Positions 18,848 to 37,489 of a stretch of DNA of 64,000 nt are shown here, one piece after another. Each line of letters begins with the position of its first letter. Position 1 is the first letter of the stretch. The position numbers and the translations under genes were made by a program. The DNA comes from Utricularia gibba (lineage: Eukaryota; Plantae; Magnoliophyta). Below the pieces are notes generated by a model. The model did no database searches. It had not been told where the DNA came from and saw only the letters and a list, made by a program, of their open reading frames with translations. The stretch spans positions 806,001-870,000 of the forward strand of contig NEEC01000021.1 of the NCBI GenBank assembly GCA_002189035.1. The letters are read 5' to 3'.

Positions 18848-20865
18848 ATGGATAGGGTTTGTAGGGAGGCGGGGCCTTGTTTTGTGCCGGAGTCACCTTC
18901 TTCTCCAATGGTTACGACATCGACAGCGATAGCGAATACGGTGAACGGATCTCATGATTTTAGGATTATGGGGTACTCTATGTCGAAGGGAATGGGAATT
19001 GGAAAGTACGTCGCATCCGACACGTTTATGGTAGGTGGGCATGAATGGGCGATCTATTTCTATCCGGATGGGAAAAGCGAGGAAGATAATGCGACATATG
19101 TCTCTCTTTTCATTGCTTTGGCAAGTGAGGGCACAGATGTGAGGGCGCTTTTCGAATTAAGCCTTCTGGATCAGAGTGGGAGGGGGAGGCATAAGGTTCA
19201 TAGCCATTTTGGCCGGACATTAGAAAGCGGACCTTATACACTTAAGTGCAGGGGAAGCATGTGGTAAGCTTATTATGATCTAATACATTGACATCTTTTA
19301 TCTGGAGGTGTAGATGCGAACCATGATGGATGATTATGATATATGTTCCCATATGCAAAGTATTCCGTGTGTTGTCAGGGTTGTTTGTAGGACATGCGCA
19401 GTGCTTTTAAGTTCTGAATATATTGTTTTAACGACAGGGGATACAAAAGATTCTTTAAACGAGCCAATTTGGAAGGTTCTGATTACCTAAAGGACGATTG
19501 CCTTCATGTGCATTGCTGCGTTGGTGTTGTTAAATCGCACACTGAGGGACCTAAGGTCTACTCCATACCATACCCGCCATCAGATATCGGTCAGCATTTT
19601 GGCCAGTTGCTTGAGAGTGGAGAAGGAACTGATATAGTTTTCGAAGTTGATGGTGAGACCTTTCCAGCCCACAAGTTGGTTATTGCTGCCCGATCCCCTG
19701 TTTTCAGAGCTCAGTTATATGGGCCAATGAAGGATCAGAATACCCAACTTGTGAAGGTTGAAGATATGGAGGCACCTGTTTTTAAGGTATTTTGAGTTAT
19801 TTGAATTCTTGATTGGGAAATCAACTTTGGGTTGACTACAAAATTTTCTGATGTTATCTTTGTTGAAAGTCGAGGTTAGGGGCCCTATAAAATATTGGCT
19901 CACATTGAGTGGCTTGAATTCAAGCCGATTTGTTCATACCATGTCTCTTATGAGGAGTGTTCTCCCCACATCATTAATCGATGTGTGAACTTTTTCAATC
20001 AACATCCCTGATGTGGTTTCAATAGCTCGGTTGTCGCTTTGTTTCTAGTGTTGTAGCATCACTGAGGAAATGACAATAATAATCACTGAGGAAATGAGCA
20101 GCACTTAGGAGTAAAGCTTGAATTTTAATTTTATTAGGTGTCGATGCTAGGATGGGTTTTTTTCTAGAATGTCAATAACATCATGTCATTTTATATTTTT
20201 ATGGGTGGAGTGAAGAAATTCTTGGTTGTTTCTTTCTAATCCATTCTCAGAGTGTAGCCTTTTGTTCCTTCTCTTGTAGGCTCTACTCCACTTTATGTAC
20301 TGGGATGCGCTGCCAGACATGGCAAGGCTCACTGGATCAAACTCAAAATGGGCTTCAACCCTGATTTCTCAGCATTTACTTGCAGCCGCTGATCGTTACG
20401 GTTTAGACAGACTAAGACTGCTTTGTGAGGCAACCCTTTGTGAGCAAGTTGCTATAAACACCGTTGCCACGACACTAGCCCTGGCAGAGCAGCACCACTG
20501 TTTTCAGTTGAAATCAGTTTGCCTCAAGTTTGTGGCGATGCCTGAAAATCTCAGAGGTAATCCTTGCAGCTTCTATCAAACCAAAAAAACACTTAACTAT
20601 CCTCACCCTCTAGCTTCATCTTGTTGGAAACAACAAATCTATTCAAATCAACTGAGCAGTGTAGCTGTTTTCCTCTCTCATTGCAGCTGTGATGCAGTCG
20701 GATGGCTTTGAATACTTGAAAGAAAGCTGCCCCAATGTCCTGACAGAATTACTGGAGCACGTAGCCAGAGTGAGCGAGCACTCCTCAGCAACCGGTAAGC
20801 AAGGAGTAGGAGACCTGATGGACAGAATCGAAGGCAACAGTCGACGTGTGAAGCAAAGGCTGTAG
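18848..20865 (+). CDS. BPM: BTB/POZ-MATH domain protein (BPM), 4 exons (18848-19263, 19438-19786, 20281-20557, 20687-20865)
   Basis: MATH domain [46 protein letters not shown] and BTB domain [33 protein letters not shown]. The paralogue number is not assignable. Confidence 0.93.
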
Positions 20866-21229
20866 CAGCTCCTCCTTGTTAATGACTGATGGTATCATCT
20901 GGCTTCCCATTGAATTCATCTGATCAGGATGTAGGTGTACATGTGCAACCCTGTAATGTCTTCTGCCTCCCATGAAGAATACACTTTGTATGGTTTTTGT
21001 ATCATTTGGCGCCTGTGATAACTCTTCTTGTACTCTTCACTGGGCAACTCCAGCATAAGTCTGTGGGTGATTGCCGTGCGTGTCCTCCGCGTCCGTACTG
21101 ACACGGGATGTGTCGCAACCCAAACCCAAATACGCCCAGACAAATCCCAAGTAAAAGATACGTGTGTATTAGAAAAAATAACCACTGTATTTTTAGTGTG
21201 TGAGAAAAATGGCTAACTTATGTGTAAAA

Positions 21230-21810
21230 ATCATAAGGTTATGGGCACTTATTATGAAAATATTCCAATTGTTATGTATTAAAATTTTGAATTTCTAACG
21301 AACTACAAATTATGTTATCGTTTTTTTAAAATGTAATTCTATTAAAAAGTTTTAATTCTATTAATATAAATAATATATATCATAATTAAAATAAAATATA
21401 TTTTATATGAAATTTACATGATTAAGTTTTACTTAATCAAAATTTAAGATAATTGTGTATAATTATGTAATAAGTTATTAATTGAGAACATGGAGATTAA
21501 ATTATCAAATAAAATATAATATAGAATACATATATTATTTTTCACTTTTCTCAAAAAATGAAATAATTAATAAATAATAAATTATAAATTATCATATTTA
21601 TTATATATGTATATGTAATAATATAATACGAAATAAGATTACATGAATATTTGTAAATAATTGATAAATATTATTGCATTATTGGTGAGAATCTTGAGAA
21701 TAATATTATCATTTTAATATATACATAATAAGATAGTACAAAATATAACAAAATGTGTATTTTTAGAATATTATTTTTTTAAAGTTGGGCCTCTAAATTG
21801 TATAAAAGGA
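21230..21810 (+). promoter_or_regulatory. AT-rich upstream module ending in TTGGGCC...TATAAAAG (TATA 21801-21808); related copies precede each fold-back locus
   Basis: Homologous blocks at about 25300-25750, 27350-28045 and 31367-32295 each end in a TGTATAAAAGG box immediately before the hairpin (TATA at 25740, 28037, 32286). Promoter function is inferred. Confidence 0.55.
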
Positions 21811-22738
21811 CTCCTCCATGGTACTACAATTTACACGAGTCAAATGTATTGTACACTGCACGCTCTTGGCGCTGGTCACGATGGCCATTTGCTCCAACCT
21901 CGGGAATCACCTTCCAACACTTTCTCCGGTGGGTGGCAGCGTCCATCATGGCAACGGCGACAAGGAGGAGTACGGTGCAGGCATCAGGAAGAAAAGGGCG
22001 ATAGGAACGATAGAGCTGCAAGAAGCTCAGAGGCATGAATTACGTATTTGATGGGCGATTCAATCCATTGAAGCAGAAGCTCCTGGTTTTTAAGGATCAG
22101 CAGGTGAATGAAACACAGAACAATGAAACAGCGCATGGGGGGAGATGGAAAGGGATCCTTGCGTTTGATTTGGTAGCTCACAAACAATACAGAAAGCAGT
22201 ATCAATACTGCGAGATTGAGCCGAGAATCATCCATCTTCTCCACGAGGAGAAGAGAAGACAGGAGGCATTTATCAGAGGATTAGAATCTGTCAATCTTCT
22301 GTGATGAATGCCTGGCTCATTCTTGCACTACTGATACTGCTTCCAGTGTTGTTGGTTAGCTACCAAATCCAAGGTGAAAATCCTTTCCATCTCCTCACCA
22401 TGCGCTTCTTCATTCTTCTGCGTTTTATTCATGTGGTGATCTGTAAAAATCAGTAGCTTCGGCTCCAATGGATCGGATCGTAAATCAAGTACGTAATTCA
22501 GGCGTCGGAGCTTCTTACAGCTCTATATTTCGTATCGCTCTTTCTTCCTAATAGCTGCTCCTTACTCCCCCTTGCTGCCGTTCCCATGATGACTGCCGTC
22601 ACCTGCTGGAGACAAGTATTGGAAGGTGCAACCCGAGGTCGATCAAAATGGCGATCGTCATCAACGCCACGAGTGTGTAATGTGCAATAACATTTCACTC
22701 ATGTAAATTGTAATATCGAGAGCCCTTTTATACAATTT
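21795..22738. repeat. Fold-back locus HP1: imperfect inverted repeat, arms about 21795-22232 and 22303-22738, loop about 70 nt
   Basis: Begins aaattgtataaaagg and ends ccttttatacaattt. The arms align colinearly along their whole length (roughly 75-80% by eye). Both arms are disrupted copies of a small membrane-protein ORF. Confidence 0.92.
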
Positions 22739-22740
22739 CT

Positions 22741-24780
22741 ATATGCTTCCTTTTAGCATGGAAGACCATATTTACTGTGAGATGAAGTGCATTCAAATTG
22801 TCGCAATGTAGTATCGGTGTGCAATTCAGATTGACCTTCAATTCTTTTAGAACAAACTGCAGCCAGATTACCTCTATTACTGTGTGTCATTGCTCTATAT
22901 TCCGCTTCAGTGTTAGATTTTGATACAGTTTGCTGCTTCTTTAAACACCAGGAGATCGAATTTGTACTAAGAAACACACAATATCTAGTGTTCGAGCATC
23001 TTGTGAGAGGGCAACTAGTCTAGTCTGCATCTGAGTACACCTCAAGACATAACTATGAGTCTCGTTAATATAGGAGTTCAAGATTCAATGTCTCTTTGAC
23101 ATAGCGTAAAATCCGATTGGCTTGAATTTAATGGTGTATAGTCGGGTCTTGCATAAACTGTGACACATAATTCATACTGTATGTGATATTTGGTCGTATG
23201 AATGTGAGATATTGTAGGACTCCAACCAATGCCCTGAAAGGTATTGGATCCTTGAGTTTCCTTTCCTCTTGAGTGATTTTGAACTTCAATACTTGTGACA
23301 TCACCACAGACTTGCAATCTTTTAATTCAAATCTGTCCAAAATGAAATGAGCATAGTGAGTTTGTGTTAGATGAAGACCTTGCTTAGAGTATGTCACTTG
23401 CATTCCAAGAAAATAATGCAATGGTCCAAGGTCGTTCATGGCAAATTCAGAGGACAATTTTTCAATGAGGTCATGTATGAGATGGGGAGCTATACATGTG
23501 ACAATGATAATATCAACATAAAGAAACAATACTAATGTTTCATTCCCTATATGAGCCACAAATAGTGAGAGATCAACAAAGGTGTGTGAAAAGCCTAACT
23601 GCAAGATAAACAAGCTAAACTTGCCAAACATGTGTCGAAAAGTTTTTATCTTTCATATATGGTGGTTATTTCATATATATATCTTCTTGAGTTTCACCAT
23701 ACAAAAAGGCATTTTTGATATCAAGTTGTATTATTTCTCAATTGTTGGCAAGTGCAATAGAAACACGAAGTCGGATCATACATGGTTGCACAACAAGTGA
23801 AAATGTGTTTTTGTAATTAATTCCATCAACCTGATTATACCTCTTGGTGATGTGTCTAGCCTTCAAACAATCAAAAGTTGCATCTGGGTTCAGCTTTGTT
23901 TTATAGATCCATTGGCACCTAATCACACGCATTCCCTCAACACATGGAACTAGAGTCCATGTGTTATTTTTTTTAAGTGCATCCATTTCATCATTCATGT
24001 AGCCCTTCCATCCTGGATGATTAAGTTCCTTTCGAAGCGTTCTGGGTTATGATGAAATAGAATAATGTCATTTCACATGGAAAGTATACTTCATATTCGA
24101 TTTGAGGATGCCAACTTGAGACCTTGTTGTCATAGAATGTGTTCTCTATACAGGAATGTCAAATAAGGAGAATGTAAAGACGGACCTAGGGGTGTTTGAT
24201 CAATTGTAGCACCTTGTTCACCTTCCTCAATTTCCACTGTGGCAGGAGAAAGGGAATTGTCATCATGAATGTCATCGTTGTGCATCCTAGCACTTATCTC
24301 CCCTGGATTAGATTCACCTTAAAGAGTGTGACCAGAATCATTTTTGGGCTCTCCAAGGCTAACACAATTCATAACATCACAAGTCTCCCCTGGAGCACTG
24401 TTACTGCCATCGTTGAGCTCTCCTAAATGATGACTACTGTTGTGACCTGTCTCCCTGTGAATTGAGGCCAGGGGTGGGACTTTGCAGTGTACCACTATCG
24501 GTGAGTTTAGGAGCAACAGATAGTGGAGGAACCACAATAGCACCCCTGAAACCAGCGGGTTCAAGGGCTGTCGACATGGGCAGGCTGGGGCCTGGAGATG
24601 CCTCATCGCAAACAGATGGATCCGGGGGAAAGTTTAGAGGTCCAACCGGTTCCGAACCGTACGATTTTGATTCGGAACCGCATGATTTCAGCGAACTGTT
24701 GTTTCCAAAATCACAGGTCACTATGGACCATGGTTTAGGTTTTTATTTGGTTCAAAATTGGAATTGATAATCTTGAATCA
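22741..24780 (-). mobile_element. Degenerate Ty1/Copia remnant (RT and part of RNase H; gag/integrase and LTRs not recognisable)
   Basis: Minus-strand frames give MNDEMDALKKNNTWTLVP...CQWIYKTK, LFLYVDIIIVT...FAMNDLGPLHYFLGMQV, LQYLTFIRPNITYSMNYVSQFMQDP and KKQQTVSKSNTEAEYRAM...[23 protein letters not shown], with frameshifts and stops. Confidence 0.9.
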
Positions 24781-25759
24781 AACCGTAACTTGAACTAATT
24801 TATTACTGTTTAAATGCGTTTCTCAAACACCCACATGAATCATTGGGTGTATCACTATGAAGTTTTAATATTTTTTAATTTTATATGTTTTTATATTAAT
24901 AAATGATATATTTAACAATATTAATTTTCATATTTTACTGGATATATTATATGATATTCTATGTTAATTTATAAAATACATTAATTTAAATTAATTTATA
25001 AAATACTCAAATAAATTATAATCAAAATCAATATAATTTATAATTTAAATAAATAAAATAAATGATAAAATTATCAATAATTGAAAATATATATGATAAA
25101 ATAAAATTGAATTGAATGGACTGATAGATGGACCCGAAGGCAAGGCTTGGGCCTACGACCATAGTTCAAAAACACGAGTAACATCAGTGGGAGGAGATGA
25201 GGCGTCAAGCAGTGGTTTAAAAATCATAGGAGATATGTTTTTAATTGGCAATCCATCTAGGTGATTTGAGATTTAAAAGTAATGGAGAAGTTATATTAAT
25301 ATAAATAATATCTATAAAAAATCAATAAAAAAATTATTTATACGAAATTTACACAATTAAGTTTTATTTAATCAGAATTTAAGATAATTGTGTATAATTA
25401 TGTAATAAGTTATTAGTTTGGAACATGGAGATTAAATAATCAAATATATAATATAATATAATATAAATATATTATTTTTCAATTTTCTCAAAAAAATGGG
25501 AGTAAAAAATAATTAATAATTAAGTGAATTATCATATTTATTTTTTTATATGTGTAATAAGATAATACGAAATAAGATTACATGAATATTTTTCAATAAT
25601 TGATGAATATTATTGAATTATTGGTGAGAATCTTCAGAGTAATATTTTCATTTTAATATGTACATAATAAGATAATACAAAATATGACTAAATGTATATT
25701 TTTAGAATATTATTTTTTTAAAGTTGGGCCTCTAAATTGTATAAAAGGACTCTCCATAT

Positions 25760-26586
25760 TACAATTTACATGAGTCAAATGTGTTATACATTGCACGCAC
25801 GTGGCGTTGGTCATGATGACCATTTGCTCCAACCTCGGGAATCACCTTCCAACACTTTCTCCGGTGGGTGGCAGCATCCATCACGGCAATGGCGACAGGG
25901 GGAGTACGGCGCAGGTATCAGGAAGTAAGAGGGAAATGAACGCTAGAGCTGTGAGAAGCTCAGAGGCTTGAATTACGGATTTCATGGGCGATCCAATCCA
26001 TTGAAGCAGAAGCTCCTGGTTTTTAAGGATCAGCAGGTGAACGAAACACAGAACGACGAAGCAGCACATGGGGGGAGATGGAAAGGGATCCTTGCGTCTG
26101 ATTTGGTAGCTCACCAACAACACTGGAAGCAGTATCATTGGTGCGAGGTTGAGCCAAGAATCTTCCATCTTCTCCACAAGGAGAAGAGAAGACTGGAGGT
26201 ATTTATCAGGGGATTAGAATCTCTCAATCTTCTGTGGTGAATACCTGGCTCATTCTCGCACTACTGATACTGCTTCCAGTGTTGCTGGTGAGCTACCAAA
26301 TCTAAGCCGACTATCCTTTCCATCTTCCCCATGCGCTTCTTCATTCTTCTGCTTTTTATTCATGTGGTGATCTGTAAACATCAGGAGCTTCGGCTCCAAT
26401 GGATCGGTTCATCCATCGAGACTGTAATTCAGGCGTCGAATCTTCTCACAGATCTAGCCTTCGTATCGCTCTTTCTTCCTGATAGCTGCTCCTTACTCCC
26501 CCTTGTCGCCGTTTCCATGATGGCCGCCGCCACCTGTTGGAGACGAGTGTGTGATGTGTAGTAACATTTCACTCATGTAAATTGTA
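25760..26586. repeat. Fold-back locus HP2: paralogue of HP1, loop about 26166-26236; right arm has a 57-bp deletion and lacks the inverted TATA
   Basis: tacaatttacatgag (25760) pairs with ctcatgtaaattgta (ends 26586). Left and right arms closely match those of HP1. Confidence 0.9.
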
Positions 26587-28005
26587 CCGTTTTTGATGTA
26601 TTTATATATGTGTTGTTAGGAATATATTATATGGTAAAATGTTATGTTATGTATGTAATTGTTGTAAAAATAGGTTAAATTTGCAATAATTGAACTCAAA
26701 AATCTAATGTTTCTTTTTAATGTATTTCTAAATTTTAACAGAATAAAAGTTAATATTAGCATTACATTTTTCGCGTTGATAAGTAAAAAGAACATAAAAA
26801 TTGTGGAAAATTGGTTTTAATGTAAATTAATTGCTTTTTAAATATTTTTTTAAAAAATCATATTATAAAAATATTTGTAAATAATTGCTGAATATTGTTT
26901 TTTATATGAATATGATGGTTTAGAATATAATTATCATGTTCATATAACTCAGGCTTTGATTACAATCCCCAAGTTGCTGAATCTAGGATCCAAGGCAAAT
27001 CTAGTTGAGGTTAAGAGACCCCCTCCATCATCGCCAATAAAAGCAACTCTGTGATCTGTAATACTAGTTTTCTGCATCGAACCTCGTATAGTATGCCAAG
27101 AGTTCCTTATGTGTAATTATGATGTTCCGCCTCATATAAGAGTGGAAGTATTTTAAACGAATTCTACATCGATTATAAATATGAGAGAAAATAAAATAAA
27201 ATAGAATGATCATATAAATCTTACATTAGATTTTTTCTTCAACATAACAAATGACCATTAATAGTAACTCTTAAATTAGACGTGTTTGAACTAAAATAAA
27301 GTGAAGATGGATAATCTTTTGGGAATTTCAAACAAACTGCAAATTATTTCATATTTTTTTAAAATGTAATTCAATTAAAAAGTTTTAATTAAATTATTAT
27401 AATTTATAAAATATATTATTATTTTTTAATAATTCACTACCATCGCAGAACCCTAATAGCGTATTACATATTCATATAACATCGTGTTATACATGTACAT
27501 GGAGATTTTATTTTCATTGGTACTCCATTTTACGTGATTCGAAATTTAAAAATAATAGAGAAATTATATTAATATAAATAATGTATGTTTAAAATTAAGT
27601 AAAATATAATTTATATTAAATTTAAATAATTTTAAGTTTTAACTTAATCAGAATTTAATATAATTGTGTATAATTATGTAATAAGTTATTCGCTCGGAAC
27701 ATGAAAATTAAATCATCAAAAATATAATAAAATATAGAATAAATATATTATTTTTCAATTTTTTAAAAAAAATGGGAGTAAAAAATAATTAACATTTAAG
27801 TGAATTATCATATTTATTATATATATGTGTGTAATAAGATAATACGAAATAAGATTACATGAATATCCGTAAATACTTAACAATTAACTGAATTATCATA
27901 TTTATTATGGTATTATATGAATGTAATGGCGGTGGGAATCTTGGGAATAATATTATCATTTTAATATGTACATAATAAGTTAATACAAAATATGAGTAAA
28001 TGTAG

Positions 28006-28915
28006 ATTTTTATAATATGAATTTTTTTATAAACTGTATAAAAGGACTCCCGGACTGTACAATATACAGTATTCTAATTGTATTATACAATAGACACCCT
28101 TGCAGGCGTTGGTGATGCTGGTGGTTCCACCTCACGTCGTAGGATGGGGCCCATTTTTCTCCATCCCCAGGATACACCAACCAGCACCTGTCTCCAGTGG
28201 GCGGCACCCATCGAACGGCGGCAAGGGGGAGGAAGACCCATGTCTGAGGAAGAAATAGGGTTAGGAAGGACACAGCTCTAACAAGCTCGGAAGGTTATTA
28301 TAATAAACATGGATCATATTACAAAAGATTAGAATCAATCGATTATTATTGAAACCTCCAAGTTTCTTACAGCTCTGTCATTCCTAACACTCTTTCTTCC
28401 TTATACCTCCCCCGTGGCGCCATTTCCATGATGGCTGCCACCGACTGGAGACAAGTGCTGGATGGTGCAGCCCGGGGATGGAGAAAAATGGGCAACATCC
28501 TACGACCACCCGCATCACCAGCGCCTGCAAGAGTGTCTAATGTATAATACAATTAGAATACCGTATACCGTACACTTTAGGGTGTGTTTGGTTTAACGGA
28601 ATGGGATAAAATGGGTTTAGTATACTTGAGTTTAAATAAAGTTGATGTATTGGGATTATTTTTTTAAGTAGTATTCAGTTATTGGAATTAACAATGAGAT
28701 TAAGTGGTTTTAAATAAAAGAAGGGAGGAATGTGGTTTTTAAATAAATCTATATAATTTTAGATTTATTTAAACCTATCAATTAAACACTTTATAATTCA
28801 TAATCCTAATTTTAAACCCATGTAATCCCATAAACCAAATATACTCTTACAGTACATGTCATTTTATACAATTTAGAGGCTCCACTATAAAAAAAAAATC
28901 ATATTATAAAATATT
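28006..28915. repeat. Fold-back locus HP3: short hairpin 28057-28573, with the outer part of the right arm displaced by a MITE
   Basis: gtattctaattgtattatacaatagacac pairs with gtgtctaatgtataatacaattagaatac (1 mismatch in 29). Loop about 28307-28342. The inverted TATA/flank resumes after 28849. Confidence 0.9.
28580..28846. mobile_element. Tourist-like (PIF/Harbinger) MITE, 267 bp
   Basis: Imperfect TIRs gggtgtgtttggttta / taaaccaaatatactc, TTA target-site duplication at 28577-28579 and 28847-28849, AT-rich non-coding interior. Confidence 0.85.
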
Positions 28916-29233
28916 TATAAATAAATGCTGAATATTATTTTGTTATGTGAATATGGTGCATTCGGAATGTAATTATCATATTCATATATTAAATGAATAA
29001 TTGTAAATAATTGGTGAATATTATTATTTTCTTTTGCATGAATATGATAGTGGTGCCTATACATCTCTGGTACCTGGGATCCCCGGTTCAGAATGTTGGG
29101 GATCCTGCTCTAGCTCGAGCTCAACTTTCGAGCAGTTCTCTCTCCTCACAAAAATGTCTGATCCAAGGCGAACCTTCTGGAGGTTTCGAGACCCCTCCAT
29201 CATCACCAACAAAGCAACTCTGTGATGTGTTTG

Positions 29234-29891
29234 CTCCATCATCACAAAACTTCGTACATCTTTTGTGTTTGCTCAAAATTATAGAGTGTGTCCAACAGCT
29301 TCTCATGATTGTAGACAGTGAGCAATCATGTGGCAGACAGCGTTCCGATATATGATCTATAGTGCTTCCCACACACTTGATAACCTTGTCCTTTACATGC
29401 CCATCATCCACTGCCTGACCCAATTTCCTCAGCCGCTTCACCATTGTGTTCACACAAGAGGTTAGATCACCCATGGATTCACCATTTTCTAAAAACAAAT
29501 TGTCCAGTATGTGCCATTGCTTGTCTATCTCTTTCTGCCTCTTTTCTATTGTCATGGCATGATTTTTTATTAGGATATTCCATGCCTTTTTGGGAGATCT
29601 GCACCCTAGGATGAGGTCATATGCTTCATCAACAACTGCCAATGTTAAGGCATGCATTGCTTTCTTTTTCTTCTTTTTGAGCTTCTTGTCAGCCGCACAA
29701 TCTATTTTTGAAGATCATGATTTTTTTTCTTTTGATTGAGCAGTGTCTGCTTGATCTTCTTCACCATGGTCTGCAAATAGGTTCCAAAGATCTAAGTTGT
29801 CCAGATGAACAGACATTTTGACGCCCCAGGCGTCATAGTCCCCTTTTCCATCAAACATAGGAGGAGGTATAAAATAAGGAGCAGAAGCCAT
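29234..29891 (-). pseudogene. Copia gag-like (DUF4219 plus UBN2-type) coding fragment with one in-frame stop, truncated at its 3' end
   Basis: MASAPYFIPPPMFDGKGDYDAWGVKMSVHLDNLDLW, then in the same frame after a TGA (29717-29715) KKAMHALTLAVVDEAYDLILGCRSPKKAWNIL...LENGESMGDLTSCVNTMVKRLRKLG. It fuses to the repeat-unit block near 29233. Confidence 0.7.
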
Positions 29892-30527
29892 TGATCTCAG
29901 AATGAGATAACAAGTTAAGCAACAAAAAAATAAGATAAAAACTGAGCTTGATGCTATTGTGACTTCCCCAGAAGATAATGTGTTCTTCGAAGAAAGAGAT
30001 GCCAAGAACGCGAAGGGTTTTGCGGGTTTCTGTGAACCCAATTTTCCTCCCTCTACATTCAAACTAGTTTTCAGTGTTTATATACATCAATTAATTCGTG
30101 CCCCATTTATTGGGCTAAATACTGTAAGTAAAAGGACCTGTGTAAAATAAATCTTCTCTTCGATCAATCAGCCTTTCTCCTGCATTAGATGCTGGTATCC
30201 AAACTCGATTTGATGGTTCAGGTTAGTATCCCACAGCTGTCACCATGTAAAGAGACATGTAGCTCACAAACTAGGAGCCTTGACATTTTCAAATTGGAGA
30301 AATTTGAATGAAGAAGAACTTAATTTTATTGTGTGTACACTTGTGTATTTATACTACTTGAGTGTGGATAGCCGTTGCACCCAAAGTGACTGTTGTTGAG
30401 CAGGTTACTGTTGCTGGTGACTTGGGCTTCTTCAAGGCTCGGGCTTCATGAGGCCTGACTTCAAGTGGTCTTGTTCGGCCCAAGATTGCCTGTCTTTGTT
30501 TGGCCCAGGATTGCCTCATCACTCATT

Positions 30528-31044
30528 AACATGGAACAAGAAATTCTTCAGTAACTTCTGAATGGATGGCTTGAAACGAATTATGCAATTAATCAATGCA
30601 ATATTCATTGAATTGCTAGCTAATATAGTGATAGGTCTTCCTTCTATTCCGCATGGTTAACGTACATTTTCAAGTAAAAGTATCAAGCACAAAACTAGCA
30701 TACCATCAAGGAGAGGAAGGCTCTCCCAAGGAACTTCAGCATCAGGCTTCGCTGCCCACACAATGGTCTTCACGAAGCCTCCATCTCCAGACAAATCAAT
30801 TGGATCACTCATGTTTTCCTCCAAGGATTCAACTGGTGAAAGCAGAAACTCAAACTTGTGAGGTAACTCATGATAAGCATTTCTATAGAATTTTACGAAG
30901 AACAACAATATTCAACGGAATTTTGCAACAAAAGTAGCAAAAATCTGTAAACTTTTCTCTCATCTGCGTTGAGATCAAACCATACACAACAATTTTGGCA
31001 TTTCTTTCTCAAGAAAAAACTTTGTCCGTAGAAAAGTAATAAGA
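30528..31044 (-). pseudogene. 5' fragment of FKBP20-1 (upstream region, exon 1 at 30812-30704, most of intron 1)
   Basis: Closely matches 34632-35133. Exon 1 reads [36 protein letters not shown]; no downstream exons. Confidence 0.88.
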
Positions 31045-31323
31045 TGTGAGGGCGCTTTTCGAATTAAGGCTTCTGGATCAGAGTGGGAGGGGGAGGCATA
31101 AGGTTCATGTTGAAACTTAGGATCCAATGAATCAGCGAGTATGCATGTGAAGCCTAAATACATAAGAAACGTGGATCACATTAGAAAAAATTAGGTCCAA
31201 CCGATTACTTTTGATCTGTAGTTTCTTATATACTAGATTATTCCACTTTCATTTTTCGATGTAGGATTGTGTATTCTAACAGTTCATAGCCATGTGGCCG
31301 GACATTAGAAAGCGGACCTTATA
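31042..31323 (+). pseudogene. Fragment of BPM exon 1, interrupted by a solo LTR
   Basis: 31042-31107 matches 19135-19200 and 31287-31323 matches about 19201-19238. The sequence then jumps to DNA homologous to the BPM 3' flank (about 21120). Confidence 0.88.
31108..31281. mobile_element. 174-bp solo LTR (Copia or TRIM type)
   Basis: TGTTG...TAACA termini and a perfect 5-bp TSD GTTCA (31103-31107, 31282-31286). The empty site is visible in intact BPM at about 19195-19205. Confidence 0.85.
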
Positions 31324-32240
31324 GGACAACCCACATACCCTCAGACAAATCCCAAGTAAAACATCAATCATAGGGTTATGCGCACTTATTATGGAAATAC
31401 TCCAGTTGTTGTGTATTAAAATTTTGAATTTCTAACAAACTACAAATGATTTTATCTCTTTTTAAAATGTCATTCAATTAAAAAGTTTTAATTAAATTAT
31501 TATAATTTATAAAATACCTTATTACAAATGTATATGAATTTTTCATGATTCAAGAAAGTCGCATTACCGTAATAATGTATTATATATTCATGTAACATTG
31601 TGTGATATATGTACACGGAGATTTTATTTTCATTGCAAACCATCATAGGTGATTCGAAACTTAAAAATAATAGAGAAATTATATTAATATAAATAATATA
31701 TATCAAAATTAAATAAAATATAACTTATATGAAATTTACTTGATTAAGTTTTACTTAATCAGAATTTAAGATAATTGTATATAATTTTGTAATAAGATAT
31801 TAGTTCGAAACATGGAGATTAAATAATCAAAAATAAAATCTAATATAGAATAAATATATTATTTTTCAATTTTCTCAAAAAATGGGAGTAATAATTAATT
31901 AACAATTAAGTGAATTATCATATTTATTATAAATATGTGTAATAAGATTACATGAATATCTGTAAATAATTAACAATTAAGTGAATTATCATATTTATTA
32001 TAAATATGTGTAATCAGATTGCATGAATATATGTAAAGACTTAACAATTAAGTGAATTATCATATTTATTATATATATGTGTAATAGTATAATACAAAAT
32101 AAGATTACATGAATATCTGTAAAGTGAATTATAATATTTATTAAAGATATTATATGAATGTAATGACGGTGGGAATCTTGGGAATAATATTATCATTTTA
32201 ATATATACATAATAAGTTAATACAAAATATGAGTAAATGC

Positions 32241-33348
32241 ATATTTTTATAATATGATTTTTTTTACAGTGGGACTTCTAAATTGTATAAAAGGGCTCGT
32301 GTACTATACAATATACGGTATTCTAATTATACGTGCATTATACAATGGAGACTCTTGCCGGAGTTGTTGATGCGGGTGGATCCACCTCCGGTCGCAGTAT
32401 GCTGCCCATTTTTCTCCGTCCCCGGGAAACACCATCGACCACCTGTCTCCAGTGGGTGGCACCCATTATGGGAACGGCGCCAAGGGGGAGGAAGCCCCAT
32501 GCACGAGGAAGAAATAGAGCTACTAAAGTCATAACTATAAGAAGCTCGGAGGCTTCAAATAGAAATTCAATGGATGCTCCGATCCATTGACGAAGGGTCT
32601 CCTGGTGTTTAAGTATCACCAGGTGAAAGAAAGAGAGCGCGATGAACCAGCGCATGGTGGGGAGTTGGAGGGGATCCTTCCCTTGGATCTCGTAGCTCAA
32701 TGATAATATGGGAAGCAAAATCGTATGGATCCAAGCATCTTCCATCTTCTCGACAAGGAAAAGAGAAAACTGGAGTTGTTTGTTGGTTGCGATCAAGTGC
32801 CATGAGGTAATTTATAAGAGTAGCGTAGCCTTTCGTGCAATCTCTCAATCTTCTATGGTGAATACTTGGAGTTGGAGCGCAATCTCGTTCTAGGGATTCT
32901 GTGTGTGTCGGGTAGAATGCTAGTGATCTCCCGAATCCAAAAGCATGGATATTCTCTTGGTTCCCATAGCACGCCGCTTTGTCCGTGCGGTGATCCTTAA
33001 ACATGGATCGGAGCATCCATTGAATTTCTATTTGAAGCCTCCGAGCTTCTTATAGTTATGACCTGAGTAACTCTATTTCTTCCTCGTGCATGGGGCTTCC
33101 TCCCCCTTGGCGCCGTTCCCATAATGGGTGCCACCCACTGGAGACAGGTGGTCGATGGTGTATCCCGGGGATGGAGAAAAATGGGCAGCATACTGCGACC
33201 GGAGGTGGATCCACCCGCATCACAAACGCCGGCAAGGGTCTCCATTGTATAATACACGTATAATTAGAATACCGTATAATGTACAGTACAGGAGTCCTTT
33301 TATACAATTTAGAAGCCCCACTGTAAAAAAATCATATTATAAAAATAT
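32241..33348. repeat. Fold-back locus HP4: near-perfect arms about 32241-32587 and 33003-33348, spacer about 415 nt
   Basis: Manual comparison of 32301-32587 with the reverse complement of the right arm gave 12 mismatches in 287 nt (about 96%), including an uninterrupted stretch of about 90 bp. Both arms carry the TATA box facing inward. Confidence 0.95.
32338..32745 (-). CDS. Uncharacterised small multi-pass membrane protein (135 aa); the only intact copy of the gene from which the HP arms derive
   Basis: Open frame MEDAWIHTILLPILSLSYEIQGKDPLQLPTMRWFIALSFFHLVILK...ELLIVMTLVALFLPRAWGFLPLGAVPIMGATHW with 3-4 hydrophobic segments. The same frame is traceable in the other arms. Expression is unknown. 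Confidence 0.5.
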   Translation of the reverse strand: MEDAWIHTILLPILSLSYEIQGKDPLQLPTMRWFIALSFFHLVILKHQETLRQWIGASIEFLFEASELLIVMTLVALFLPRAWGFLPLGAVPIMGATHWRQVVDGVSRGRRKMGSILRPEVDPPASTTPARVSIV

Positions 33349-33928
33349 TTGTAAATAATTGCTGAATATTATTTTTTATATGAATATGATGCATCCAGAA
33401 TGTAATTATCATATATATATATATATATATTAAATGCATATTTGTCGATAATTGGTGAATATTATTTTCTTTTGCATGAATATGATGGTGGTGCCTTTAC
33501 ATCTCTGGTACGGTTCACCTGGGATCCCGGTTCAAAATGTTGGGGATCGAGCTCAACTTTCGAGCAGTTCTCTCTCCTCACAAAACTGTCTTTGCATGTC
33601 TGAATCTAGGATCCAAGGCGAACCTTCTGGAGGTTTCGAGACCCCTCCATCATCACCAACAAAGCAACTCTGTGATGTGTAATACTAGTTTTCTGCATGG
33701 AACCTCGTATAGTATTCCAAGGGTCCCTGATGTGTAGTATTCGTTTTCTGATGTGCAAAGCTGAACGTCTTGCTGTGTGTGTGTATTTTGCTACCCAATA
33801 GTGTGCCTCTTTCAAACAAAGGGAGAAAGAGATTGATTTATGGTTTTAATTTTCAAACAAGAACTGTACTACAAAATACATGCAAGGTCTGGTTTAACAG
33901 GCACCTTATTTGATGGTGGTATTATGCA

Positions 33929-34917
33929 TCATTTTGCTTTACCTTTTCCCTTTCCTTGGCCTTTCTTGGCATCAAGTTTGGCTTGCATCCTTGCTGCAGC
34001 AGCTGCTTTGGCTTCTTCTCTTTTTTTCTTTTCTTCCTCCTTCAATGCCGCAGCAGCTTCTCTCTGCTTCTTCAGCTCCCTGAAAATGTTTGAAAGATAG
34101 CAATGCAGCTACATAAAAAGAAGGGCATTGTCTTGCAAATTCTGTAAGGGAATCATGCCATAAACTTACTCCAACCGAGCCTTCTCAATGTTAACACTGT
34201 TCACTGTAGATCCTTTCCGTGGCCGGCAGGCAATCAGCTCTATCTCGAAAACAAGGGTTGAACTGCATCAACAATTACTCAATCACATTCTGCTCTTTTG
34301 TCAACCTTCAGAAGTGGACCAGAGCAGTTTGAAATTTACTTGGGTGGAATCTCCGGTGGAGAACCTGCACTGCCATAGCCATATTCCGGCTTACACGTAA
34401 TCGTTGCGACCTCACCAACCTGAGAACATGTGCATATAAGGAAGATGCATAAACAAAAAAGGATGAGGGTAAGCAATAACCTAACCTTCATTGTCCTCAG
34501 GGCAATGTCCCAGGCTTGTATGACTGATCCCTTGCCCAGTTCAAAGGTGAAGATACTGTTATCCTCTTTGGTAGAATCAAAGACCTCTCCAGTCTCAGCA
34601 AGAATGCCTTCATAATGAACTATGGATACCAAACAATGGAACAAGAAATCATTCAGTAACTTCTGAATGGATGGCTTGAAACGAATTATGCAATTAATCA
34701 ATGAAATATTCATTGAATTGATAGCTAATATAGTGATAGGTCTTCCTCCTATTCCTCATGGTTAACGTAAATTTTCAAGTAAAAGTATCAAGCAAAAAAC
34801 TAGCATACCATCAAGAAGTGGAAGGCTATCTGTTGGAACTTCGGCATCAGGCTTCGCTGCCCGGACAATGGTCTTCAAGACACCTCCATCTCCAGACAAA
34901 TCAATTGGATCACTCAT
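33929..34917 (-). CDS. FKBP20-1: Peptidyl-prolyl cis-trans isomerase FKBP20-1 (exons 34917-34809, 34619-34486, 34419-34340, 34262-34170, 34079-33929)
   Basis: [18 protein letters not shown]...[17 protein letters not shown]...[46 protein letters not shown], ending in the basic tail [16 protein letters not shown]. Confidence 0.93.
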
Positions 34918-37489
34918 GTTTTCCTCCAAGGATTCAACTGGTGAACGCAGAAACTCAAACTTGTAGGCATTTCTATAGAATTTTACGAAGAACAACAATA
35001 TTCAACGGAATTTTGCAACAAAAGTAGCAAAAATCTGTAAACTTTTCTCTCAACGGCTTTGAGATCAAACTATACACAACAATTTTGGCATTTCTTTCTC
35101 AAGAAAAACTTTGGCCGCATAAAAGTAATAAGAACTGGCTTCACCTTTGAAGTAACACTTGCTTGCAAAAAGAATGGAACCTATGGATTAGAAGATCAAA
35201 GCTGATCAGATAGTGCAGAGCAAGTGCTGCATTAGTGCCACTCCAGCTTAGGGTTCAATCATACGCGAGAATCTTTCATCAACAATAGATGCAAATGAAC
35301 CAGCAGATAGAGTATCACCACAAACCCACAAACAGCATCCAATTCAAAGCTTGAGGACAATCATCAATGGCAATAATGGACCGAAAACAGCCGAAATCAA
35401 CGATCAACATTTTTCCAAGCTTACTTACCATGCAGCAGTGGAAACCCTAGACGGAACGGGGACGGTGAACAAGGAAACTTCAGTGAGAAGTATCTGGAAC
35501 AATCATTGGGCTTTGGCCATAAAGAGTGTACTCCTGTCGTCCGGAGCTCCTCGCGTACTCGCCACGCACAGATTCCCCCAGATTTTTGCACCGGCCGGGC
35601 TTGGGTGATGGGCCTCTAATCCACGGGTCAAGCCCCAAAGGCCCAGGCCCATTAACCTCCTTTGACGTTTTGTTAATTTAATAAGGTTTTAATTGTAATA
35701 AATATTTTTTCACATTCAACTTTAATTTTTCATTGCCCAGTTATCTCTAATTTTTCTATTTTAAAATTCTTAGTAAATTGAAATATCAAATTTATTCGAT
35801 AAAGATTTTAATAGAGTTGCAGATAATAAGCATGAAAACAATGGCCTATATTTATCAGTTTGATCATTTTTATGTTAATGAACTGTTTCTATGTTGTTTT
35901 CATTGTAATTATCCTATTGTTAACTTGGTATTATTAGAACAAATAATATCATATCAAAAAATTAAAACAAAATGTTCAAGTATATAAAAAATTATAAATT
36001 ATTAATAATTAATTATATTTCATTTTTTTAATGTGATTTATGTTTATTGTATATTTATATTTTACGTATGTTCGCTCAACTCATCCTATACTCAATTTCA
36101 ATATAGTATTAAGATATTTATCTCATGACAAGACTGAATGACTAAGATATATTCATATTCATTTGAGTTTTAGTTAAAAAAAAACACAGAAAAATGTGTT
36201 AGGCTTATGCGACAAAATTAGATCAATTTATGATTTTAGTATTACTCATAATTATAAAAAAAAGTTTTAATCATATCAAACATCATTTCAACTTAAGTCT
36301 TCTGTTTATTATGTAATTAGCTTTTATATAGTTCATCTAATCTATTAAATCCTTAATTTCAACAAATGTATGTTTACGACATATAGTATCTGTGAACTTT
36401 TATGTAAGGTACCTCGCTTTTCTTCTTTTCCCGAATGAAGAAATATCTATGTCATTTAATCTTTTATTTTGCTCGCCTGCAACCCCACCAAGCTGATTAA
36501 CTTCAGCCAACCATCTTCGTTCTTCATTACAATTACCAGAGTGTTCCGAATGGGCAGGCTCTGCTGTGGGAAAAGAAGAGGAAGAGGGGTTGGGTTGTCT
36601 GAGATCCGGGTTTGGACCCGTCAAAGGAGGGAGCCATGAATGAGTTCCAGGCGGTGCTCAGAGCAGGACTCCAAATGTTTAGTGTGTAAAGAATGATGTT
36701 ACAGAAGCTCACGAGAGAAGCAAGGCCGGAAATGGGAAAGAAGACAAGGGAGGAGAACCCAGTCTGCTCCCAAATTCTCATCCTGTCTCTCAAACGTCAA
36801 ACCCTGTCCGAACCCTTTCCGCAGTACGCAACAAATCTCCGTCATTTCCGCCACTTTGAAACGCCTGGAAATCCACACAAACCCCACTTCTTGCAGTCGT
36901 CTTCCTACCTGCCATATCTTGAATACAAAACTAACCTCTACGCCCATCAGAACAAAAGCATTTCTCAAGTAATCTACAGCATTCATCAAATCCAGTTCTT
37001 ACAGTCGCCTTTCTACCCCTTATCTCTTCAATTTCTTCAATACAAAACTAACCTCTACACCCATCAAATGGCTGAGGCTTGATGCTATTAGAACAAACGA
37101 CACTACATTCGTATTTGAATATGAAATAATCACATACATAAGAGATTATGAATTATCAATAATTGAAAATAGTCACTTATACAATAAATTATGAAACATG
37201 ATTAATTATTTGGACTTAATTTTTGTAGTATGATTCAAGTTTCTTGTATAATTGAGTTTCACGTGTACTTATTTGATCTATAGAATTCTAAAGTTTAAAA
37301 GACCCAACAAAAAGAAACTTCAAAATAGTGTGTTATGCGTTGGAACTGGCTGTAGGGTATTGCTCATGATCCCCAGAAATCCCGAGACAATCGGGCTTTC
37401 AAGGGCAAATGCGATGTACACAGAAAGAGCGAAGACTAGTCATGCAATTGTTTTACAATAGAAACCTCCATTGTCGTTTAGGAAATGGT

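Follow-up and report, generated by a model that had tools for sequence, protein, structure and literature searches.

Evidence for recent arm homogenisation in one of four tandem inverted repeats of Utricularia gibba

Introduction

How does one of four neighbouring inverted repeats of the same origin come to have two almost identical arms while its three sisters decay, and is the hairpin that it could form a selected regulator or a by-product of its history? These questions are raised by a locus in the nuclear DNA of the plant Utricularia gibba, within a stretch of 64,000 nt (contig NEEC01000021.1, positions 806,001 to 870,000) that was analysed as a whole and is called the window below; all coordinates are counted from its first letter. 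Several kinds of known system bear on the answer. Arm-to-arm gene conversion is known from the palindromes of primate Y chromosomes and from the inverted repeats of plastids, and Arabidopsis has endogenous long inverted-repeat loci, IR71 and IR2039, that give rise to hairpin-derived siRNAs (hp-siRNAs). In the model of Allen and Fahlgren, young MIRNA genes are said to arise by inverted duplication of a target gene.

Results

Structure of HP4

Repeat finding and blastn recovered the locus, HP4, as a pair of inverted arms around a spacer, 1.1 kb (1108 nt) in all (Table 1). In a MAFFT alignment of 347 columns the arms are 95.4% identical and differ by 15 substitutions (8 transitions and 7 transversions) and one single-base indel, with uninterrupted identical runs of 91, 60 and 50 bp between them. 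The manual count in an initial annotation of the window, 12 mismatches in about 288 nt with perfect runs of about 90 and 60 bp, was accurate: exactly 12 lie within 32300-32587, and the two longest runs are those of 91 and 60 bp. In the predicted RNA fold the arms pair from end to end (MFE -766 kcal/mol). We confirm that HP4 is a genuine inverted repeat with young arms.

Table 1. Coordinates of HP4, its sister hairpins and neighbouring features in the window
Feature	Position	Strand	Remarks
HP1	21795-22738	.	Sister hairpin; arms about 75-77% alike
HP2	25734-26548	.	Sister hairpin; right arm truncated
HP3	28006-28915	.	Sister hairpin; arms 78% alike, central deletion, MITE in right arm
MITE, Tourist-like	28578-28849		About 272 bp, in HP3 right arm; TIRs of GGGTGTGTTTGGTTTA type, TTA on either side
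HP4 left arm	32241-32587	+	347 nt; pairs with the reverse complement of 33003-33348
TATA-like 15-mer	32280-32294	+	AAATTGTATAAAAGG; points into left arm; TATAAAA from 32286
6-nt insertion	32328-32333	+	Mirror at about 33257-33262; in both HP4 arms, absent from HP3, HP1 and HP2
Hydrophobic ORF, 135 codons	32341-32745	-	Stop 32338-32340; ATG at 32745 in spacer; runs outward through left arm
HP4 spacer	32588-33002	.	415 nt
TATAAAT	32812-32818	-	In spacer, about 67 nt upstream of the ORF ATG; read directly from the sequence
HP4 right arm	33003-33348	-	346 nt
Mirror copy of last 82 ORF codons	33004-33252	+	In right arm; private stop at 33064-33066
Mirror TATA-like 15-mer	33296-33310	-	Points into right arm
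FKBP-type gene	33929-34998	-	Lysine-rich C-terminus; stop near 33929, about 580 nt from HP4 right arm

A tandem array of four hairpins

HP4 is the fourth of four paralogous hairpins that form a tandem array in plant nuclear DNA. Each is part of a repeated unit, about 2.3-2.4 kb long, in which the sequences to the left and right of the hairpin are homologous as well. Since this holds on both sides of all four copies, the hairpins multiplied through tandem segmental duplication, not through insertion. The arms of HP1-3, which had been described as visibly older, are indeed only 74-78% identical, compared with 95.4% in HP4, and in HP3 the MITE cuts off the outer arm end (28850-28915). The array occupies the 3' flank of the FKBP gene, the transcription of which runs toward the right arm of HP4. 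The window also holds a GeBP-like gene, a MATH-BTB gene (18.8-20.7 kb), copia fragments, a malectin-like receptor kinase gene, a PPR gene and others; the closest relatives of the PPR protein are all from Lamiales, at 61-67% identity.

History of the arms

The initial annotation had proposed that HP4 was recently re-formed or homogenised by conversion between its arms, and a phylogeny over all eight arms, put forward there as a check, bears this out. With L and R for the left and right arm of each hairpin, the tree is ((1L,2L),(1R,2R)) | (3R,(3L,(4L,4R))), and the two HP4 arms group together with support of 99/98 in the alignment of all eight hairpin arms. AU tests reject orthology with the corresponding arms of HP3, both for 3L with 4L (p = 0.005) and for 3R with 4R (p = 0.0004). 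Over 278 comparable columns, private changes number 18 in 3L and 23 in 3R but 9 in 4L and 2 in 4R. At 14 columns both HP4 arms are unlike both HP3 arms, and 7-8 of the 14 were polarised as derived in HP4; the 6-nt insertion carried by both HP4 arms likewise marks arm-to-arm copying. Taken together, the tree, the AU tests and the derived changes common to both arms support a recent homogenisation of HP4 by DNA copying from one arm to the other, which took place after the HP3 unit (unit C) and the HP4 unit (unit D) split. Judged by the arm divergences, the copying is roughly one fifth to one third as old as that split.

There was no bias in copying direction among the diagnostic sites, 23 being L-like and 18 R-like. 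The differences between the arms are unevenly spread, with 11 in the outer 127 nt and 5 in the inner 220 nt (Fisher p = 0.014), which hints at more than one copying tract, the younger one nearer the tip. Beyond 32587 and 33003, right beside the 60-bp perfect run, the inner arms are only about 53% alike, so that 95% identity gives way at a discrete edge to older divergence, as at the boundary of a conversion tract.

Two further observations concern the rate and type of change. Among the polarised substitutions in the core alignment of the HP3 and HP4 arms, transversions are unusually frequent (37/63, or 59%), and arm divergence between units C and D proceeds at about twice the rate seen in the flanks. 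Misalignment, repair synthesis in the palindrome or the mutation spectrum of the host could each account for this fast, transversion-rich divergence.

Limits of the repeat and origin of the spacer

The left part of the HP4 spacer and the inner left arms of HP1 and HP2 are homologous, and in the right part a collinear remnant of 31 nt survives from the inner right arms of these two hairpins; it scored z = 8.4 (HP1) and 16.7 (HP2) in local alignment against shuffles. Because the spacer holds these collinear remains, it is the decayed inner part of arms that were once longer, about 470 nt in the ancestor.

At the other end, HP3 has an outer arm end of the HP4 type behind its MITE, HP2 retains the last 31 nt of it, and in HP1 a copia fragment cuts the arm off at this point. 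HP4 thus keeps the ancestral outer limit of the repeat. We had considered the 45 bp beyond the TATA-like motif as proof of left-to-right copying and rejected it, since HP3 has the same outer end.

The TATA-like motif

The TATAAAA of the motif starts 45 bp inside the left arm of HP4. The 15-mer is found in seven of the eight hairpin arms, with the consensus TATAAAAG, and the whole window contains eight matches, seven of them in hairpin arms, compared with 0.58 expected. No other 15-nt window of the arm alignment is as well conserved (mean pairwise identity 0.96, column mean 0.75), and 2.6% of column shuffles reach this value (p about 0.03). Such conservation could be the sign of a selected promoter. 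The motif also follows the stop codon of the outward ORF at a distance of 44 nt, and a TATAAAT and a conserved ATG belong to this ORF itself, so that a putative inward promoter and a 3'-end element of the duplicated gene are equally good readings. What had been called convergent TATA boxes therefore stands in part: the motif is present with its 45 bp in both arms, points inward and is best conserved, but the 45 bp are not peculiar to HP4 and the reading as a 3' end serves as well.

A 119-nt stretch upstream of the left motif, which adjoins and overlaps the outer end of the left arm, is 96-98% identical between units D (32148-32266) and C (27911-28029), compared with about 80% for the arms and 85-90% for the other flank. 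Either a recent conversion tract between the units or a constrained element would explain it.

An orphan ORF in the arms

The 135-codon ORF is intact in the left copy of HP4 only, the versions in HP1-3 being shorter or frameshifted; its ATG context, GAGAAGATGGA, is common to HP4, HP1 and HP2. In the mirror copy the stop codon is a derived change found in the HP4 right arm alone. We read HP4 as head-to-head copies of a small gene-like unit, of which the arms would be the 3' halves of a putative orphan ORF.

Searches for relatives of this ORF gave little. The eight arm ORFs had no significant match in Pfam, a word search with a 152-aa ORF found no homologues, and a profile built from the aligned arm ORFs matched a single spurious repeat protein among 1.84 billion representatives. 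Matches in the Protein Atlas were to unnamed plant clusters only. The ORF and the neighbouring PPR protein were both absent from a protein cluster collection on exact look-up, and pattern scans of metagenome contigs at the DNA level gave no match. Protein-guided dN/dS in the ORF is 0.4-0.57, and a control over all six frames gave comparable values for other frames; pN/pS for the ORF is 0.6-0.8, no lower than in several other frames, and the ORF has no codon-position bias.

Small-RNA potential

HP4 has seven helices of at least 21 bp (91, 60, 60 and 25 bp among them), whereas HP3 has one and HP1 and HP2 lack them; in structural terms the initial annotation was right to name HP4 the best predicted Dicer substrate of the four. 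A transcript of it could form long dsRNA according to the predicted fold, and HP4 has the long, near-perfect intramolecular stem that marks hp-siRNA loci. Convergent promoters and dicing would be plausible here. In U. gibba, DCL3 is truncated and 21-nt RNAs dominate (PMC8333044); if HP4 were diced, mostly 21-22-nt products would therefore be expected. Among the major RNAs that the ShortStack table of that study gives for two unitigs, none matched HP4.

A canonical plant MIRNA gene was taken to be a single short fold-back, no longer than about 300 nt, in which one miRNA/miRNA* duplex dominates. This assignment was rejected for HP4, with its 347-bp stem, 415-nt loop and seven long helices and no match to a curated family; an Rfam scan by E-value over 20000-37000 placed no family on it. 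For HP3 a match to MIR7533 (28139-28503, minus strand) with E = 6e-12 on a short search was likewise rejected, as its 59.6-62.5 bits fell short of the gathering score of 230 and arose from pairing and not from sequence, and so was MIR2118, at 23.8 bits against a gathering score of 85.

A history of cytosine methylation at the arms was also considered and dismissed: C>T and G>A changes together make up 13/63 of the polarised substitutions, with no excess, and CpG is not depleted (observed/expected 0.86). A search of the rest of the window found no target-like sequence.

Discussion

We propose that HP4 is an inverted duplication of a gene unit that was renewed by conversion between its arms, with the hairpin as a by-product, and we consider this account probable, if by no means certain. 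A small gene-like unit would have been duplicated head-to-head, and tandem segmental duplication would then have produced the four copies in the 3' flank of the FKBP gene. The left copy in HP4 would be nearly whole, reading on the minus strand from the TATAAAT through the ATG and the 135-codon ORF to about 100 nt of 3' flank, while the right copy would be recognisable over no more than its last 347 nt. Once units C and D had split, intrachromosomal gene conversion between the arms would have equalised these outer 347 nt, with the tract stopping where the inner arms were already too diverged. At the DNA level the comparisons of the arms demonstrate their equalisation. At the RNA level we infer that a transcript across both arms would form an almost perfect stem of about 347 bp, from which dicing would release mixed siRNAs; transcription might begin at one or other of the outer TATA-like motifs, or continue into the hairpin from the FKBP gene, which is encoded on the same strand about 580 nt upstream. 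We take this hairpin potential to be a by-product of duplication and conversion and not a selected regulator.

Another possibility is that HP4 is a selected hairpin-RNA gene of a proto-MIRNA-like kind, in which Pol II transcribes convergently from the outer TATA motifs, Dicer cuts the stem, repeated homogenisation of the arms is selected for the perfect stem that it maintains, and the siRNAs control the orphan family from which the arms came. The preservation of the 15-mer in seven of eight arms as their most conserved window would fit this, as would the 91-bp perfect helix, the approximately 120 nt upstream of the left motif that are 96-98% alike in units C and D where the arms are about 80% alike, and the survival of four hairpins in a genome that is probably strongly prone to deletion. 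We nevertheless think it unlikely. The arms of HP1-3 have decayed until only 74-78% identical, none of their helices exceeds 21 bp, and one arm of HP3 has a MITE within it; from the decay of these three sisters we argue that the stem is not under steady selection. Nor is there a sign of selection for pairing, as no more than 3 of the 8 transitions would leave a G:U pair in the plus-strand RNA. The window has no target-like sequence elsewhere and no Rfam family falls on HP4, and the motif is equally well a 3'-end element of the outward ORF. A more elaborate proposal is that the four hairpins form a self-renewing small-RNA system, in which recurrent conversion restores one perfect stem at a time and inward TATA promoters lead to 21-22-nt siRNAs that regulate an orphan membrane-protein family, in a minimal genome with a crippled 24-nt pathway; we regard this as speculative and give it little credence.

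The remaining alternatives concern the origin of the DNA itself. The right arm of HP4 may have been re-created by a new inverted duplication, arising from a template switch in replication or from fold-back repair; this would have taken the place of the old outer right arm, with no conversion between pre-existing arms. The inner boundary is sharp, with a 19-nt gap in the right arm at that point, and unrelated sequence directly adjoins the 60-bp perfect run, as such an event would predict. An arbitrary outer end would be expected as well, whereas the actual outer boundary coincides exactly with the ancestral limit of the repeat, which HP3 shows too and HP2 in part; this favours conversion guided by homology over a fresh inverted duplication, which we hold to be rather improbable, and the denser outer differences suggest that copying occurred more than once. 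The 347-nt terminal inverted repeats, the AT-rich ends and a GTAAAT hexamer 2 nt outside both of them are reminiscent of a non-autonomous DNA transposon or foldback element with long TIRs. It is very improbable that HP4 is one, given that both flanks are homologous in all four copies, as in segmental duplication, that there is no clean target-site duplication and no signal of a transposase or other TE protein, and that the interior is old arm sequence. A fold-back chimera from assembly or long reads, for which the palindromic shape is the one thing that speaks, is scarcely credible: the 16 differences that separate the arms and the unique 415-nt spacer, with its old homology to the sister units, exclude it, and three diverged paralogues next to HP4 share its architecture.

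Among known systems, the plant hp-siRNA loci are close to HP4 in structure. It has a near-perfect stem of several hundred bp and a loop of a few hundred nt, is intergenic as they are, and would yield heterogeneous siRNAs without an RNA-dependent RNA polymerase. The Tpd1 hairpin of teosinte pollen drive is a hairpin-RNA locus of this kind in a plant (PMC11390486). HP4 differs from these loci in that its sister copies are decaying, which speaks against constraint on the stem. The arms of HP4 also look as if a small gene-like unit had been duplicated in inverted orientation, the step with which the Allen and Fahlgren model begins, and HP3 has been shortened toward the size of the precursors of young MIRNA genes. 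Dominance modifiers at the S-locus retain proto-miRNA features (PMC13128112). The stem and loop of HP4, at 347 bp and 415 nt, are in contrast far outside the dimensions of MIRNA precursors.

HP4 resembles converting palindromes, of which a palindromic duplication on mouse chr12 is a further case (PMC13688818), in that its arms are nearer to each other than to their paralogous counterparts, have derived changes in common and end their identity at a discrete tract edge. It differs from the Y-chromosome, plastid and mouse examples in its length of a few hundred bp, not tens of kb, and in that only one of four sister hairpins was recently homogenised. HP4 is an ordinary kind of inverted repeat, a case of concerted evolution in a small inverted duplication, with a putative role in small-RNA production. 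With three decaying inverted repeats and a renewed one, all of the same origin, the array provides a natural series for hairpin birth and death, and it is suited to asking whether the perfection of a stem sets its small-RNA output.

Other repeats and fragments in the array

Several minor features of the units were also recorded. Two copia-type fragments lie on the minus strand, at 22739-24700 and 29121-30062. In one of them the C-terminal part of pol adjoins the outer end of the HP1 right arm, its stop codon (22753) being 15 nt away from the repeat limit; unit C, unlike unit D, has a gag part inserted. Unit C also holds a 91%-identical copy of the 5' part of the FKBP gene (30531-31044). In the right flanks, about 250 bp beyond the right arms, a block has been kept about 88% identical in units B, C and D (26977-27115, 29160-29230 and 33600-33736). 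To the left of HP4, about 160-350 bp from its left arm, a 71-bp tandem repeat is present in 2.7 copies with 93% matches (31892-32086), and weaker copies of it continue to about 32150.
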